Shown: positions 22,635-30,966 of the stretch, one piece after another
Layout: the number at the start of each line of letters is the position of its first letter
Position numbering within the stretch: position 1 is the first letter of the stretch
Assembly (NCBI GenBank): GCA_009103225.1
Contig: RHPI01000638.1
Coordinates: 186,001-250,000 of the forward strand
Direction: 5' to 3'
Length of the DNA stretch: 64,000 nucleotides
From: Chlorokybus atmophyticus
Taxonomy: Eukaryota; Plantae; Mesostigma and Chlorokybus algae
Position numbers and translations under genes: made by a program
The notes under the pieces: model-generated
The model's input: only the letters and a program-made list of their open reading frames with translations
What the model was told of the DNA's origin: nothing
Databases searched by the model: none

Positions 22635-23160
22635 CCCTTGGCTTTGAAAGCAAGCCATGCGTCGTTGAGGTAGAAACCTTGCTTTTACTTCACAAGCAGC
22701 ACATATAGATATAGTTTGGTATTGCACGCTTAGGTGGATGTTTTGATGTAAGTGTGTAGTTATGTGTGTAGGTACTGTACTGTGTGTTTGTAGCCATTCA
22801 CCAAGGCCAACCTGATGTTGCCAGTATGCGCAGCACGTGCAATGCTGACAGGAGTACTTTGGCTTGTGCTGCCATAGGTGCCCGCTGTATATGCTTCAAA
22901 AGCGAGATGCGCACACAATCGTGTTCTGCATTGTGTGTACATGTAGGGTTTGGTGCCGATGTGGTTCCAGCAGGTCAACATGTGAGCGGATTGTTGCACA
23001 AGGGAGGGAGCGTACAAGTGGTACCTATAACTAGAATATGGGCAAGTGAGGGAGCGCTTGGGAGTTCCTAGGACGTGGGCGGACATGAAGGCAGAACATT
23101 AATAACAATGACAATGACAATGAGCAAGACCTTGCACACGCGCCAGTGCGGGTGCGCTCT

Positions 23161-24018
<858 letters not shown>

Positions 24019-24881
24019 CTCGGCCACGCAGAAGCACAAGTGCAGCTTGCACAGCAGATCGTGGCGGTCTCAATCAATACAGACGAAAACAGAGCCACAG
24101 AGCCAGCAGCAAAGTACGTGCACGTCATGCAAGCTACTGGTGCACCAACACCGAGCGCTCAATTATAGCATAAGCAATAACCTGAAGTGACACTGCCGTG
24201 GTGCCAGGTATGCCCAGAGCAGCCATCATCTATAGCCTGAGTCAGCTGCGGTGAATTTTGCATGTAACTCGGAAACGCCTTCCGTAGTCTGCGATCGCAC
24301 CTGCATGCTACTGAAGGGAAGGGAATGTACCGCAGGTATGCAATCAAATGGCCCTTTTCCCCCAAGGGGAAGCAAGGCAGGAAGACCAACCGGCATTGCA
24401 CCTACGCAGCCCCAACATGCAGACTGGCGCTGAACAGGTATTTGCTCAGTGCCAGTCTGCGCTGTACTCGTAGAAGCTGACTTCTTATGCACACATCAGC
24501 AGTGCACTCAGAAACGTACCATCAAGCGACAGTCACTTGCACACAAGACACGCCTTCACATTGGTTAATGCAAAACTACCCAGGTAGCATGCCCTGCAGC
24601 AAGTGCTGAAGACGGAGCTCATAAAGACTACAGTGTAACCATCTGACGGTCCACACTGCAGTCAAGATGCCTGCATGCCGAGGTTCACATGCTGCTGCTG
24701 CTTCTGACCATGCGCAGATTGCAGTTGCTCGATGCCCTTGAGGAGGTATCTCTAGGACGCCCGTCCAACACGCTTGTGCGTTAAGTTGGTGCAATGTGCA
24801 CCAGATGAGGCTGTTATTTATCCACTGCTCGGGTCGGAACAGGTTGATCAACTGCGCTTGCACAACATAAGGAATCAGGCA

Positions 24882-27800
24882 CTAGGAAGGACGTTTAGCA
24901 GGCAAGCAAAGGTCGTGGCTGCCAGCCATGGTCGCCTGGCACACATTGTTACCGACTGTTAAGGACTGCAATGTGGGCTTACTTTGAACACCAGCTTTGC
25001 CATCTTCATTGACAACGGGTATGATGCTACGATATAACCCTGTGTCATTGGGTGGAGCTTGTGCAACAACAAAGATGGTCGCTTCGGTGGCCAGCTGAAT
25101 GTTAACCAACAGACCATGCAGGCGCCTGCAAGCAGTGAATGCCCAATCAACACAGGTGCAGACCGTAGCTTATAGTTCATCACGTTCCACAACAAACCTG
25201 TGCTTGTTGCGCACAAGTCAGCCTCATACCTGCAGCCTTCCTGGTCCAGATGTTGCATGACTTGATCAAGGACGATGAGGTTGCAACTGAACCCCAGCCT
25301 TTCATGAATGTATTTGTTATAGGCAAGCGCCATTACAATTGCCAATTGGCGCAGCTCACCACCAGAGAGCTGCTGCAAGGTTTGCGATACCAGACATCCA
25401 TTGATTTTGACTTGCACTTTTCCTTTGATTTTTGTGGACTCCTGCCAAGTCGCACATGTATGTCACGTGCAATTTAGATCGGTATCAGCGACGTAGTCAC
25501 CAAGACATATTGCATCTCAAAACACAAGCATACGACGCTCACCATTTGTAGGTTTAGCTCAATGTTGGCATCGGAAACCAACTTGAGATACTCCGAGACA
25601 CAAGCTTGTAGATGCTTCAGTTCAGCGCGGACAATACGGGCCTGTTGCGCATACAAAGTGACAATGCGCTCAAACCACATTGCATCGACAGCAACTGACC
25701 TGAATGCCATCGGGCCCTAGTGCCTTGTCAACGGCAGTCAGGATCGCCGTCTTCTGCCTCAGCTCAGTTGCTTTTTTGTGGTTGTCCAACATTTCCAACA
25801 TGTTTGCTGATTCCTGCTGCCTGCTGACAATTGGGTGCAGTGGCGTCATCACTCGGCACTGCAGTGGTTGCAGTGCACCTACGTCAATATAGAAGCCTCG
25901 GTAGAATACATTATTGAGGTCCTGTGCTAACGGACGGCTCTAGAAGTCCATTTATTGCACACTATGACTTGCGCATGCTCTCTCCAGGCTTGGGTTGCGC
26001 AAACCTACTGTGACCGTTTACACACTCTGGAGTATTTCCATGCACTTGACTCCTTGCTAGCACTGCCATGACACCTACCTGCTTGTAGCTGTCGCATCTT
26101 CCGCATCACTAAGGGATGCACTGTTGGCAGCTGAAACGTCCTGCACACAATGCGCAGTCAGTCCTCAGTACGGTACTGCAGCGGGGTAATCTTCTGAAAT
26201 GGTGTGACCGACACTTTGGCACTGTGCTCAACAGCTGCTGCGATTCCCTCACCGTACTCCCCACACTGGCCACTGGCTGGTCAACCTCCTGTTGTGAAGA
26301 TTGGAACGAGTTAAACCAACCAAGCAAGGGCAGCAGTTGTTTGGCACAGCTAGCAACACAAACTGAACGGACTTGGCTACTATCAGTCCCTTATGACTGT
26401 GAGCAGTACAGCGTATGTACCTGTTGTCCACGGCTCACATCGACAGCCGAATTCGGTCTTTCCTCAAGAGCTGATTGCCGATCCAAAACTTTGTTGATCT
26501 CAAGTTCCAGTTCCTCAATCTCTTGGGTAATTTTGCTTTGCTTTTTACCTCGTAACTTCCTTGCTTCACACCATACTCGATCAATAGTGCAAACGAGCAC
26601 TTGCTTCAACTCCATGTCACCCAAATCCAGCAGGACTTTGATCGCATGCTGGTGGTGAAATGCTATGCGAGAGATTAATGCAGTTCTGAGTTCTTTGTCG
26701 ATCAACTTCTGGATGACATCTTTCTTGCCTGTCCGGTATGTCCAATTGCGCCGATACTTCAGCTTATCCCTGCCGACCAGATGCAAAAGGGCCCTTGAGT
26801 GGCGTGTCTGAAATCTGCACTTTACCTCATGCGTCCAGAATGCGATACGGTGCACTGCGTGTGTAAAGTACCTGTCATCATCATTTGAGCGATTGCTGTG
26901 CTTGGACACACATCGCTCAACTTCGAATTCCTCGTCGGTCGTATCGTACTGCAATCTGCCTGAGAGCCACACTGTAGCACTGTCTGCTTTAGGATGAATC
27001 ACGGATGTTATAGCCAAACTGGAAGGTCCAAGTCTTAGATCAAGTTTTCCTGCCAGGGACAACCTCAGCTTGGACAAGTGCTTGGGCTAACCAATCGAAT
27101 GAAGCAACAGCCATCGTCAACACACAATGTGCGCGCTACTGGACACAACGCGATGCCACCCAAATCTCCATCAATGATCAGAGCAAGCATGCAAATGCAA
27201 AGGGACCTGACGAGTCCGTGTCCTCAGAGCCTTGCGGTTTATGATGAACATATGCGCTACCTGTGAGAGCCCACAAGGCTGCCATAACAAGAATGGTTTT
27301 GCCTGCGCCATTGCTGCCCTGTACCAAGTGAATGCCATGATCGTCAAGCTGAAGTTCTGTTTTCTTCAGAAATGGACCGAACCCTTCAAGCTCCACTTTG
27401 CACAATTTCACCACTGCACACGCAGGATTACTCGCGCATCATGTAGGGTGCACCATGTGCAATATTCTGCTATGCCATGGTTGATGAGGCAGATGAAACC
27501 CACCAGTACCCATTCGTTGAAAGAGTGAACAATCATTATAACTTGGCGTGCTCTTTAGCAGTTCTTGGCCAGCTTTTATCGCCTCCGCGCTCATGTTGGT
27601 GCTTCTGCCATATTTGGCAAACACCTCAACACGATCCTATGAGGAGCACGAACACATGTATGTATCAGCACACAAGCCCAGATTCGTCTGTAGCTTCGAT
27701 GGAAACGTCCGTCGCATAGCAGCATGCCAGGGAATCGTGCTGTACAGATCGGATAAACAGAAAGAGCCTACAGCACACGTAATGCTGGTGGCACTGCAGA

Positions 27801-29288
27801 TAGTAGCACAATGTACACGTACAGATCCATCCTCAAGGTGGAGGTGTGCGGCATCCAACTGATCCTCTGTTTCATAGACTTCCATTGGCACAATTTCCTT
27901 CAGTTTCAGCTCCTCCTAAAGCCCAAGCAAGTGCAGTGTGCCTCCTAAGTCCTCTGGCAGCAGGCATTACTTTGATGCCGCTTACCTTCACCTTAATAAC
28001 ATCTTCGTCCCTTGTTTTATAGCATAAGCGAACAAGGTCGTGCTTTTCTATGTTTGCGAGCTGCTTCTGCGGAGGCTGATATACACCACGCTCATCATGA
28101 AGCCTGATAACATGATGGCGAGGCCCCACGCATATTGCTTCTTCAGATACCACCTGGGAACCACCACATTGGTTTGCACATTTGTACAATGGCATTGTAA
28201 CAAGTGAGACCCATGCCGAATCTCTTGAAGTTCATTACCTCAAAATCCTTGTTCAAGATGAACAAAGATTTGTCTTGACCCGCTTCTCGGAAAGTCGTCT
28301 GAACACAGAAGCACTGCTTCGCGACGCTGTATGCATAAAGCACAGTTGCTAACTATGTCTAAAACAGTCTCAACCTCATACGGTGAGCCAATGTATGTGA
28401 CCGTGCCAGCAGACTGTTCGATAGCAAGTTTGACTTCGTGCTTTTTGTGATAGTGTCCTGAGAAAGTCCGACTTGAGGCAGGAAATACGCTGCGCTTCAC
28501 TGCAAAATTCTGCTGCGCGTTTTCATTTGCCTCAGCGGTTTCCTGCCATCACCAATTGCCTGCCATCAGTACCAATAGCTGACTGTACAGCTTCTACATT
28601 TAACTTACCACGCCCACATGAGCAAAGATGGCCTTTGCGCCGATACCAAATTTTTTCACTGCGTCTGCAAAAGCCCTTGGGTCGTGTTGGTAGGGGATGA
28701 AACAGGCGTTGCCGTCTAGAAACCTACAAGGTTCCTGCAACACCTTGATGTACCCGTCACTGGCATACTCCAGCAGCATCAGTGCTGCGCTGCCTACTTC
28801 ATTTGAGTACACCTGCAATGCAGAAAACGTGTAAGGAGACCGTGCAACAGATCGCACGCAAGGGCTCACCTAAGAGTGGACAACATGGACTACCTGGTCA
28901 TGGTTTCCTGGTATCATCACCATCGGCTGTGTCCACAAGCGCAGCAACTTTACGACTTCATGAAGCAATTCAATTGGCATCAAGTGGTTTGCCTCGTGCC
29001 AGAAGTCCCCCAAGAACAGAATGCCTGCTTTCCTGCGGGTGCACAGGTGCTGTGACTGCATGAGCGTCCACCTGTGCTTGTGTCCAGATGAGATACTTAC
29101 CGTTCTACTGCTAACTGATGAACCCGATTCAGGACTTTCTTGCAGGTAGCCAGCGATCGCATGCTCAGATGCAAGTCGGAAAATAACACCCAGTGCTCGT
29201 ATATCTTGTAATCTGGGGCATAAGGCTCGCGGCGCCCCATGACAGCTTCAGTATAGGACGATGAGGCCTTGCTGCTGACCTGCTCCAT
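24882..29288 (-). CDS. SbcD(Mre11/gp47-like nuclease)-SbcC(Rad50/gp46-like ABC ATPase) single-chain fusion, ~15 introns; N- and C-termini uncertain
   Basis: Calcineurin-like nuclease motifs SDLH (29169-29180), LGDFWH, GNHD (28897-28908), AHVGV, GHYH (28447-28458), GSPYE. GT-AG intron 27414-27509 joins ..SLFQRM in frame to VVKLCKVELEGFGPF..GSNGAGKT (Walker A 27295-27318). Later come FHHQ (Q-loop), LSGGE (25355-25369) and LIVLDQVMQHLD. The model may extend further 5' (exon-like pieces up to ~29880) and 3'. Confidence 0.85.
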
Positions 29289-30966
29289 TCTATAGCCAGG
29301 CTGTGGGTCAAAGGAGCGTGCGTCTGGACAGACTGAGCATGCCGTATGCGTATACTCAGCAACGCTCTTGAATGTTGCTTGCCAGCATACCAGCTATCAC
29401 TGACCACCCATTGCTAAGAGAGCAAGCGAGCAAATGCAGCCAACCGCTGACCTTGGCTGCTTATGGCTCAATTACCACAGCTGACAAGAAGGGGGCCGTG
29501 CCGCTTTGTTCTGAAGTCCCTCACCCAAATCGTGAGCCTGCAATGCGCTTGACTAGCATTGCGGATCTGCGTGAAGGCAACAGCACTACTGAAGTGGAAA
29601 AGAACAAGCGGCACACAGAGCGAGCAAAATTCACCGGTGCGTGCGCTGCTCTGCTCTGTTAGGCTATGCTCGCCCAGCAAATCTCCCACAACTTAGCAGT
29701 ACCTGCCATGGGCATGTATCAGCTGCGTCGTTCAGCAGATGCTGGGCGTCCAGCCAATGTAGGCCTAAGGCCAAGGGTCAGCAGCATCAAGAGCTAATAA
29801 AGGCTGGCAGGCCACTAAGCTGCGCCGCCTCAAGTGCTCTCGCCGCCAAGCACACACCCCAATTCTTCACTGTCGCTAGGCATGTCAACCTCCTCCTGCG
29901 CGTCTCAGTGCGACAAGCGTGCTGACATCAGCAATGTCAGTGCACTCCATGCTTCGACTCAGTGCCGTGGAACTCTACCAATGCCACCGTGGCAGCGCTA
30001 GACTTCCACGTGGCTTCAATGCACTGCTGGTGGCAGTCTCGTAACGACTCTTGTTGCTGTTGTCTGTGTATCTGGTCATATTTGTATATCTCAACGGTGT
30101 CTATGTTGATATATACAAATATGTCTGAATTTTGATTGATCAAATCCAGTTTAATCGTAAAAATGCAAGGACTAACAGTTGCATTAGTATATATGATTTC
30201 ATATCATGATATGAGATTTGCTCAAGAGCTCATGTTGCGTAGCACAAATATTACGATATAATCATAGTTAAACACATGGTAAATTTGTAATCCAATCTTA
30301 CTTTAAGATATGAAACCATAACTTGTATAAAGAGCTAATACTAGCTCTGGTGTTGTTACAATTGTGTAGTAATCACATTGGTGCTCGATGAACTTTTGTA
30401 ACACTGTAAGCATCATGCTTTATACCACATAACTCGCAATAGAGCTGCTTGAAAAATTACGCTCAAGGTCACATGCTATCCATATGCTATCAGCATTGAT
30501 TGTAATGTAATGAAACAAAAGTAAAGGGAGTTGTGCTTGGGACACTTGATCGTAGGGTAGTGGAAGTATATGATGAATGTATAGGGCACCCGCAATAGCA
30601 CACAGACTCACGCACACGCACGCACTCACCTGCAGCCAACAGTCAGGAGGCAAGCACAGACTGATGGGGGTGGGGGGGGTGTAAAATTAGCGAAGTGAAG
30701 TTACTGTACCACACAATCACACCCCACTAGATGCAATGCAAGTGATGGTGGGGAGCAGAGCAGATAGGCCAACCCATACGTATGACATGTATGCCCAACG
30801 TATTAACCAACTCATGACACTACCAGTAGCCAAATACTCAAATGCTGCACTGAGTGTTCGTTCAAGGGCATACGTGCTCGGCGCTAAACCACCAAGTGAC
30901 AAAAATGTAGTGACCAGATTCCAGGGAGATAGGTTGTCGTGCTAGCTTTGTGCTTTGCTTCACATG

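Follow-up and report, generated by a model that had tools for sequence, protein, structure and literature searches.

A single-chain fusion of an Mre11/SbcD-type nuclease with a Rad50/SbcC-type ATP-binding cassette (ABC) ATPase is encoded by a transcribed and spliced nuclear gene of the alga Chlorokybus atmophyticus. The gene, JGI Chlat1/2493 (Chrsp175S02368), occupies positions 24814–29288 on the minus strand of the 64,000-nucleotide stretch analyzed here (assembly GCA_009103225.1, contig RHPI01000638.1, positions 186,001 to 250,000), which is referred to as the window. Taken as a whole, the data are best explained, with high probability in our judgment, by a member of a known family of single-chain Mre11-Rad50 fusions that has become a trimmed, fast-evolving Chlorokybus duplicate. 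Such fusions have been on record in eukaryotic nuclei since 2011, and public databases already list the protein; on that point the gene is ordinary. What is particular to Chlat1/2493 is that this paralog is trimmed and hookless, carries Gln in place of the Walker B catalytic Glu, and has no presequence.

Results

Gene structure, transcription and splicing

A gene model was built by hand from the reverse complement and a list of open reading frames (ORFs), with introns chosen to hold one frame open from the ATG at 29288; every intron in this model has GT..AG ends. The resulting RNA-supported model contains 18 exons and 17 GT-AG introns and encodes ~847 amino acids in a single open frame, from the ATG at 29288 to the stop codon at 24814–24816. 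Exons 1–8 (27504–29288, residues 1–384) specify the Mre11/SbcD-like half, as assigned by Metallophos, PHROG 100 and an AlphaFold2 (AF2) model. Exons 9–18 (24814–27413) specify the Rad50/SbcC-like ABC ATPase half, as assigned by AAA_23, SMC_N, SbcC_Walker_B, PHROG 77 and the AF2 model.

Half of the sampled words of the gene stretch were found in RNA run X1 by a run search, a share that fits the amount expected of a spliced mRNA. At the joints of the X1 contigs the excised segments read CT..AC on the plus strand, which is GT..AG on the gene strand. A 1886-nt contig spans 29334 to 26420 and crosses the nuclease/ATPase boundary, with spliced introns on both sides. At the boundary itself, the 90-nt GT..AG intron 8 (27414–27503), which separates the last nuclease exon from the first ATPase exon, has been removed (joint 27413/27504). 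The domain joint reads ATG GGT ACT G/TG GTG AAA and is translated in frame as QRMGT/VVKLCKVELEGFG. A 1427-nt contig covers the 3′ exons, including the joint 24851/24983 left by the last intron (24852–24982, 131 nt), and a loose end connects 26288 to 26421. The C-terminus of the product ends in ...KAGVQIDQPVPTRAVDK. An extra 102-nt intron, at 26770–26871, divides a long exon according to the RNA contigs. Chlat1/2493 was confirmed as a transcribed, spliced, intron-rich nuclear gene for one nuclease-then-ATPase chain.

The original prediction, made from the nucleotide sequence, had placed five nuclease motifs and a split ABC ATPase in one frame, and this arrangement was borne out by the motif coordinates, the domains and the RNA joint. 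It had also put an intron at the nuclease/ATPase joint, and the RNA contig shows that intron spliced in frame, but across the 90 nt given above and not across 96 nt (27414–27509). The gene end proposed at 24882 falls inside the last intron. Against two separate mRNAs, which the prediction had allowed for, one RNA contig joins the halves in frame.

Upstream of the coding region, an unspliced leader (29289–29481, minus strand) is covered by RNA contigs at 29100–29334 and 29305–29481. It holds an in-frame TAG at 29394–29396, which makes the ATG at 29288 the first usable start and settles an N-terminus that the original prediction had left unresolved. Three short upstream ORFs in the leader (ATGs at 29411, 29388 and 29340; 4, 10 and 10 codons) may exert translational control.

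The annotated protein (P0001, 842 residues), named by a word-indexed search as eukprot jgi/Chlat1/2493 of Chlorokybus, departs from the RNA contigs at two places, 28299–28374 and 26253–26288, and both versions are in frame. At one, the annotation retains 21 nt (VETVLDI) that are removed by splicing in the RNA; at the other, it omits a 36-nt exon (EVDQPVASVGST) that is present in the RNA. These discrepancies could be alternative splicing or annotation error.

An artificial union of two neighbouring genes, produced by an erroneous gene model or by chimerism in the assembly, was weighed against these data. RNA contigs by themselves cannot prove a single transcript. However, the in-frame spliced joint lies inside a contig with spliced introns on either side, no ATG opens the ATPase half, and more than 100 homologs from many phyla share the same single-chain architecture. 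We regard such an artifact as extremely improbable.

The nuclease half

The five nuclease motifs lie in one frame: FSDLH (29183–29169), GDFWH (29010–28996), GNHDQ (28908–28894), FAHVG (28626–28612) and GHYHKKH (28458–28438). Judged from the alignment, the Mre11-type metal site of Chlat1/2493 is intact, with all metal-ligand motifs I–V conserved. Residues D38, H40, D72, N106, H107, H174, H207 and H209 occupy invariant columns of the family and H75 a nearly invariant one, and all are found in P0001. The near-invariant Asp that follows nuclease motif IV is replaced by Gly.

Metallophos was matched by exon 2 alone and by the whole of P0001 at 4.2e-5 (Pfam), and the SbcD-like phrog_100 was matched at 3.1e-23 (PHROGs). 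The half consists of a phosphodiesterase core, a capping-like domain and C-terminal helices. An AF2 model of residues 1–392 had a predicted local distance difference test score (pLDDT) of 79, and its top PDB matches were all Mre11 or SbcD structures (3av0_A, 5dny_A, 7yzo_B, 4tug and 4lty), with E-values of ~1e-12 over ~330–400 columns.

The ATPase half

The ATPase motifs were located as Walker A GSNGAGKT (27318–27295), Q-loop FHHQH (26660–26646), signature LSGGE (25369–25355), Walker B LIVLDQ (25279–25262) and D-loop QHLD (25255–25244), with FVVAQA at the H-loop position (25073–25056). The AAA_23 match begins at profile position 1 in exon 9, the extreme N-terminus of a Rad50/SbcC head, and SbcC_Walker_B was matched by the signature/Walker B exon (exon 16 of the final model, 15 of the first). 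Against Pfam, the whole of P0001 matched AAA_23 at 3.7e-14 and SMC_N at 2.2e-11; the SbcC-like phrog_77 was matched at 3.9e-28 (PHROGs). Besides these diagnostic domains, single exons searched against Pfam and PDB returned weak or generic ABC matches. The largest exon, searched with HMMER against the whole library, matched its own protein P0001 at 100% identity and no relatives.

An AF2 model built from 40 homologs had a mean pLDDT of 84, and its best PDB matches were Rad50 and SbcC heads at E ~1e-18. The coiled coil is short in this model: helices 567–605 and 625–673 form arms of ~40–50 residues, and the apex (606–625) is disordered and without CxxC.

The Walker B motif ends in Gln, encoded by a CAA codon at 25262–25264, where the catalytic Glu would be expected from the family alignment. 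Glu stands in this column in 25/25 other aligned family members, and a VLDE-type Walker B was present in 37/39 top homologs scanned, the pattern not being found in the remaining two. The X1 contigs show no difference at the CAA codon, and the sole difference listed for that exon in a second RNA sample, X2, lies at 25345. Within the aligned family, the Walker B Gln is peculiar to the window copy. At the H-loop position nearly all members of the fused family carry Gln, and the His-less H-loop is not peculiar to Chlat1/2493.

PADLOC returned generic SMC/ABC-type similarity only (mad3, LmuB and PbeC) and assigned no defence system.

Membership of a described fusion family

Mre11/Rad50 fusion proteins were described by Yoshida, Claverie and Ogata in 2011 (Virol J 8:427, PMC3175470) in Mimivirus (R555), slime moulds, some bacteria and plasmids, and one phage. 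Their analysis, which delimited the family by sequence only, included a supported "moss-diatom-prasinophyte group" (Physcomitrella A9RK34, Phaeodactylum B7FXD6, Micromonas C1N0B1 and C1FJU6) and placed the fusions outside the canonical clades (PMC3175470). Cellular organisms with a fusion, the moss, diatom and prasinophytes among them, also keep separate canonical Mre11 and Rad50 genes (PMC3175470). Chlat1/2493 is a member of this already described family, which is widespread in plastid-bearing eukaryotes. The novelty attributed to the fusion by the original prediction is largely removed by the 2011 paper; that the fusion might belong to a known family was a possibility which the prediction itself had raised.

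The match to the 2011 group was made by organism and architecture and not by accession. The window protein shares with it the nuclease-to-ATPase order, the short linker, a GDxxH motif II and the distance from canonical Mre11/Rad50 and SbcCD, and its homologs come from the same kinds of organism (Physcomitrium, diatoms and a prasinophyte). Unlike that group, it is ~300–600 residues shorter, has about half the coiled coil, and has no CxxC hook, Walker B Glu or N-terminal extension.

A homolog search returned 323 proteins at E ≤ 1e-3, the best of which are ~1050–1450 residues long and carry Metallophos, AAA_23 and SbcC_Walker_B. The best named homologs belong to chlorophytes, Mesostigma, bryophytes, a lycophyte, red algae, diatoms and a haptophyte. 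Spirogloea, a cryptophyte, Chromera, Euglena and Galdieria joined them when the lycophyte protein served as the query. With the data now available, the distribution of the family does not look sporadic any more; in these lists it spans green, red, diatom, haptophyte, cryptophyte, chromerid and euglenid lineages, and its tree broadly tracks the green-lineage species tree. No fern, gymnosperm or angiosperm member was present in the homolog lists, that of the lycophyte query included, which suggests loss of the fused family in euphyllophytes.

Curated models of two-subunit proteins fitted poorly. NCBIfam scores fell far below the cut-offs for sbcc (TIGR00618, 28.2 bits vs 478.5), sbcd (TIGR00619, 15.7 vs 77.65) and the archaeal Rad50 equivalog PRK01156 (34.3 vs 847), and P0001 matched no curated eukaryotic Mre11 or Rad50 model. 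A PDB sequence search with the Chlorokybus paralog described below gave marginal Rad50 matches only (1e-5). With the PHROG matches, these results uphold the prediction that the nuclease is SbcD/gp47-like and not like eukaryotic Mre11, and P0001 is much closer to phage-type SbcD/SbcC than to bacterial SbcCD or archaeal Rad50. Chlat1/2493 shares the folds of both halves with phage gp47/gp46-type proteins and Escherichia coli SbcCD (6S6V, 7YZO), but is a single chain, whereas SbcD and SbcC are separate polypeptides from adjacent genes. The Mre11 and Rad50 folds are likewise shared with the eukaryotic nuclear MRE11-RAD50(-NBS1) complex, in which, by contrast, they are split between two proteins, and the coiled coils are very long and bear a zinc hook.

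The literature searches found no experimental work on the algal and plant fused family and no later papers on the algal/plant group; the works citing the 2011 title were all virological, and its UniProt accessions occurred in no other paper. Queries combining SbcCD with plastid or chloroplast, or using "Mre11-Rad50 fusion", found nothing relevant.

Viral, phage and bacterial relatives

A scan of viral sequences yielded 299 relatives. Among the 18 loci examined, two (L013 and L014) carry a fused, intron-less Mre11-Rad50 ORF of ~1030–1050 residues with the CxxC kept. The L013 ORF (4998–8147 of that locus) has an RNA polymerase Rpb2 gene as its neighbour on a contig of 372 kb, and the L014 ORF (4986–8078) a mitochondrial-carrier gene on one of 311 kb, settings which mark both as giant-virus-like. 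More than 100 environmental proteins of ~1000–1045 residues are related to the L014 protein. Giant-virus fusions of the Mimivirus R555 type, for which L013 and L014 and not R555 itself were compared, resemble the window gene in being a single ORF with nuclease then ATPase. They differ from the 17-intron window gene in having no introns and in keeping CxxC, and show 26–29% identity to the Chlorokybus paralog used as the query.

In a quick 45-row tree from a fast alignment, the eukaryotic fused proteins formed one group (Shimodaira-Hasegawa-like approximate likelihood ratio test, SH-aLRT, 94), sister to L013 and L014 (100), and the two-ORF phage and bacterial pairs were separated from the fused group. 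The tree is unrooted, so the direction of virus-host transfer is not readable from it.

At least 12 distant loci were found in a scan of bacterial and archaeal genomes. In the bacterial loci with ORFs examined (L001, L003, L004 and L008; Chloroflexota and Armatimonadota), nuclease and ATPase are separate adjacent ORFs. A cyanobacterial origin was not supported: among the matches listed, the only cyanobacterial one was from Spirulina, covering the ATPase alone over ~150 residues at 27% identity. Since the nearest non-eukaryotic relatives are viral, a horizontal origin of the fused family is reasonable. Of the horizontal or endosymbiotic source originally proposed, the first part is reasonable at the level of the family and the cyanobacterial alternative is not supported, there being only distant two-gene bacterial relatives among the matches listed.

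The viral kinship also bears on whether the window gene entered the assembly as a bacterial contaminant or by recent insertion from a giant virus, and would favour the latter, as outside eukaryotes the family is closest to giant-virus genes. Against both stand 17 spliceosomal introns removed in RNA, an argument that the original prediction had made against contamination with a count of about 15, and the position of the window protein, which groups with the host paralog inside the streptophyte clade. Either origin is extremely improbable on these grounds.

A divergent paralog of Chlat1/5253

The best match of Chlat1/2493 is a second Chlorokybus protein, Chlat1/5253 (P0002, 1178 residues), at 39% identity. 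In an IQ-TREE phylogeny (LG+C20 PMSF), P0001 was sister to P0002 (94/84) within a Mesostigma plus Chlorokybus clade (98/99), and the end branches measured 3.46 for the window protein and 0.44 for P0002, a roughly 8-fold difference. The 45-row tree placed the window protein identically, within the Viridiplantae/streptophyte fused clade. It joins a short branch and not another long one, which argues against long-branch attraction. By these phylogenetic indications, Chlat1/2493 is a Chlorokybus-lineage-specific, fast-evolving duplicate of the canonical Chlat1/5253. No ortholog outside Chlorokybus was found in the homolog searches, and an exact-sequence look-up of the P0002 locus gave no match.

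The two proteins share the nuclease motifs, Walker A, Q-loop, signature, D-loop and the Gln at the H-loop position. In contrast to the window copy, P0002 has a 133-residue presequence-like N-terminus, the hook cysteines C796 and C799, and a Walker B that reads IVLDE. The loss was quantified over the 142 columns in which 88% or more of 25 other family members agree. P0001 keeps 111 of these (78%), among them all nuclease metal-ligand motifs, Walker A, Q-loop, signature and D-loop, and changes the other 31. C796, C799 and Q801 of P0002 fall within a deletion in P0001, E1120 is replaced by Q, and two Arg flanking the signature are altered, one 5 residues before LSGGE and one 3 after. The nearly invariant CxxC zinc hook and the long coiled coil of the family are absent from P0001. 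Its Walker A-to-signature span is 310 residues, compared with 577 in P0002 and 505–717 in the family; about half of the coiled coil has been lost.

RNA sample X2, which bears the same organism label, contained a diverged version of the gene over 24700–26106. All three exonic codon differences (3/3) alter the amino acid (G817K, L750V and E647T), some segments are below 95% identity to the gene, and some contigs are unspliced. The diverged version indicates that the paralog is also present in another strain or species and is fast-evolving there too.

These observations have to be read against the main rival explanation, in which Chlat1/2493 is an expressed but decaying duplicate that has lost targeting, hook and catalytic Glu under relaxed selection and has no role of its own. 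The ~8-fold longer branch, the 31 conserved positions lost, several of them otherwise invariant, the three amino-acid-changing differences in X2 and the lack of an ortholog beyond Chlorokybus in the searches would all be expected of such a gene. Yet the 847-codon frame is intact over 18 exons, all splice sites are good, and the gene is transcribed and spliced. The 111 conserved positions retained include every nuclease metal-ligand and ATP-binding motif, and the AF2 model is confident. Decay is a serious contender but, in our estimation, an unlikely one.

N-terminus and localization

P0001 has 35 residues before motif I, and 6 of its first 40 residues are acidic. Most orthologs carry acid-poor, Ser/Arg-rich extensions of ~50–170 residues, typically with no acidic residue in the first 40 or more. 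The 133-residue N-terminus of P0002 is rich in Ser, Ala, Gly and Arg, with its first acidic residue at position 65. A presequence-like extension, a feature of most orthologs that lies outside the 2011 definition of the family, is missing from P0001.

N-terminal composition and phyletic pattern make organellar action of the canonical family plausible. For the window copy, organelle targeting seems unlikely from its sequence, and with no presequence the protein probably stays outside organelles. Marchantia and diatom orthologs yielded no localization evidence in the main text of plastid-proteome papers, and the Marchantia locus tag occurred in no paper.

The original prediction had cast the window copy as a horizontally or endosymbiotically acquired end-processing machine acting on organelle DNA. 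The long acid-poor, Ser/Arg-rich N-termini of the paralog and most orthologs speak for that idea, as does the restriction of the family to plastid-bearing lineages in the homolog lists. For this copy, however, the short acidic N-terminus and the in-frame stop in the leader tell against it, and no cyanobacterial fused ortholog was among the matches listed. An organellar machine is quite improbable here, and that part of the prediction is not sustained.

Surroundings of the gene

About 0.6 kb downstream of the stop codon, GA-type and other short-unit simple repeats extend over ~1.1 kb (23031–24190) and yield spurious ORFs of 320–370 residues in five reading frames. Upstream of the gene, an AT-rich low-complexity stretch lies at 30060–30500 in surroundings of ~50% GC.

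Discussion

In Mre11-Rad50 and SbcCD, the ATPase heads dimerize around ATP, the complex clamps DNA, and the ATPase gates the nuclease. By analogy with these complexes, the fused chain would join an Mre11/SbcD-type Mn-phosphodiesterase to a Rad50/SbcC-type ABC ATPase, and two chains would associate by way of their ATPase heads, with ATP between them. DNA ends would then be clamped by the heads and the short coiled coils, and the tethered nuclease would cut under the control of the ATPase. The mechanism presumed to be shared with the phage and bacterial SbcCD-like systems is that of an ATP-gated nuclease on DNA ends and hairpins. In the AF2 model, helices 349–387 before the head may stand in for the Mre11 helix-loop-helix at the coiled-coil base, a replacement that has been argued for the fusions (PMC3175470). 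The window copy would not tether through a hook. It probably binds ATP and, because of the Glu-to-Gln change at Walker B, hydrolyzes it slowly, which would make it a long-lived clamp or a regulatory variant and not a processive end-processing machine.

Several points weigh against the interpretation of Chlat1/2493 as a trimmed, fast-evolving duplicate acting in this way. The effect of the E-to-Q change on ATP hydrolysis is known from engineered Rad50, SMC and ABC mutants and is applied here by analogy. The sister relation to P0002 is moderately supported (94/84), with the window protein as the longest branch in the tree, and canonical Mre11/Rad50 and SbcCD sequences were left out of both trees. 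Start-site assignment considers sequence up to 29500 and not further upstream. The loss of otherwise invariant residues (the hook cysteines, E to Q, R1080Q, R1092Q and D1163I), like the long branch and the exonic differences in X2, would fit relaxed selection.

A more far-reaching possibility is that the window copy has been neofunctionalized as an ATP-locked (Walker B Gln), hookless, non-organellar protein. It might then sense or cut DNA ends in the cytosol or nucleus, foreign or viral DNA being one conceivable target, or pair asymmetrically with the canonical copy. In the same proposal, the canonical family would be an organellar double-strand-break processor of algae and non-seed plants with giant-virus kinship. 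We consider this rather unlikely as a whole.

The trimmed-duplicate interpretation of Chlat1/2493 places the gene in a family of wider interest. We know of no nuclease identified to date as processing organellar double-strand breaks in plants, so the fused family is a testable candidate, and studies of how organelle genomes are maintained could reasonably take it up. That giant-virus fused genes are the nearest relatives found bears on the direction of virus-host gene flow. The window copy itself is a natural experiment, in which targeting, hook, much of the coiled coil and catalytic Glu have been lost from a protein that keeps its nuclease site and is still expressed.

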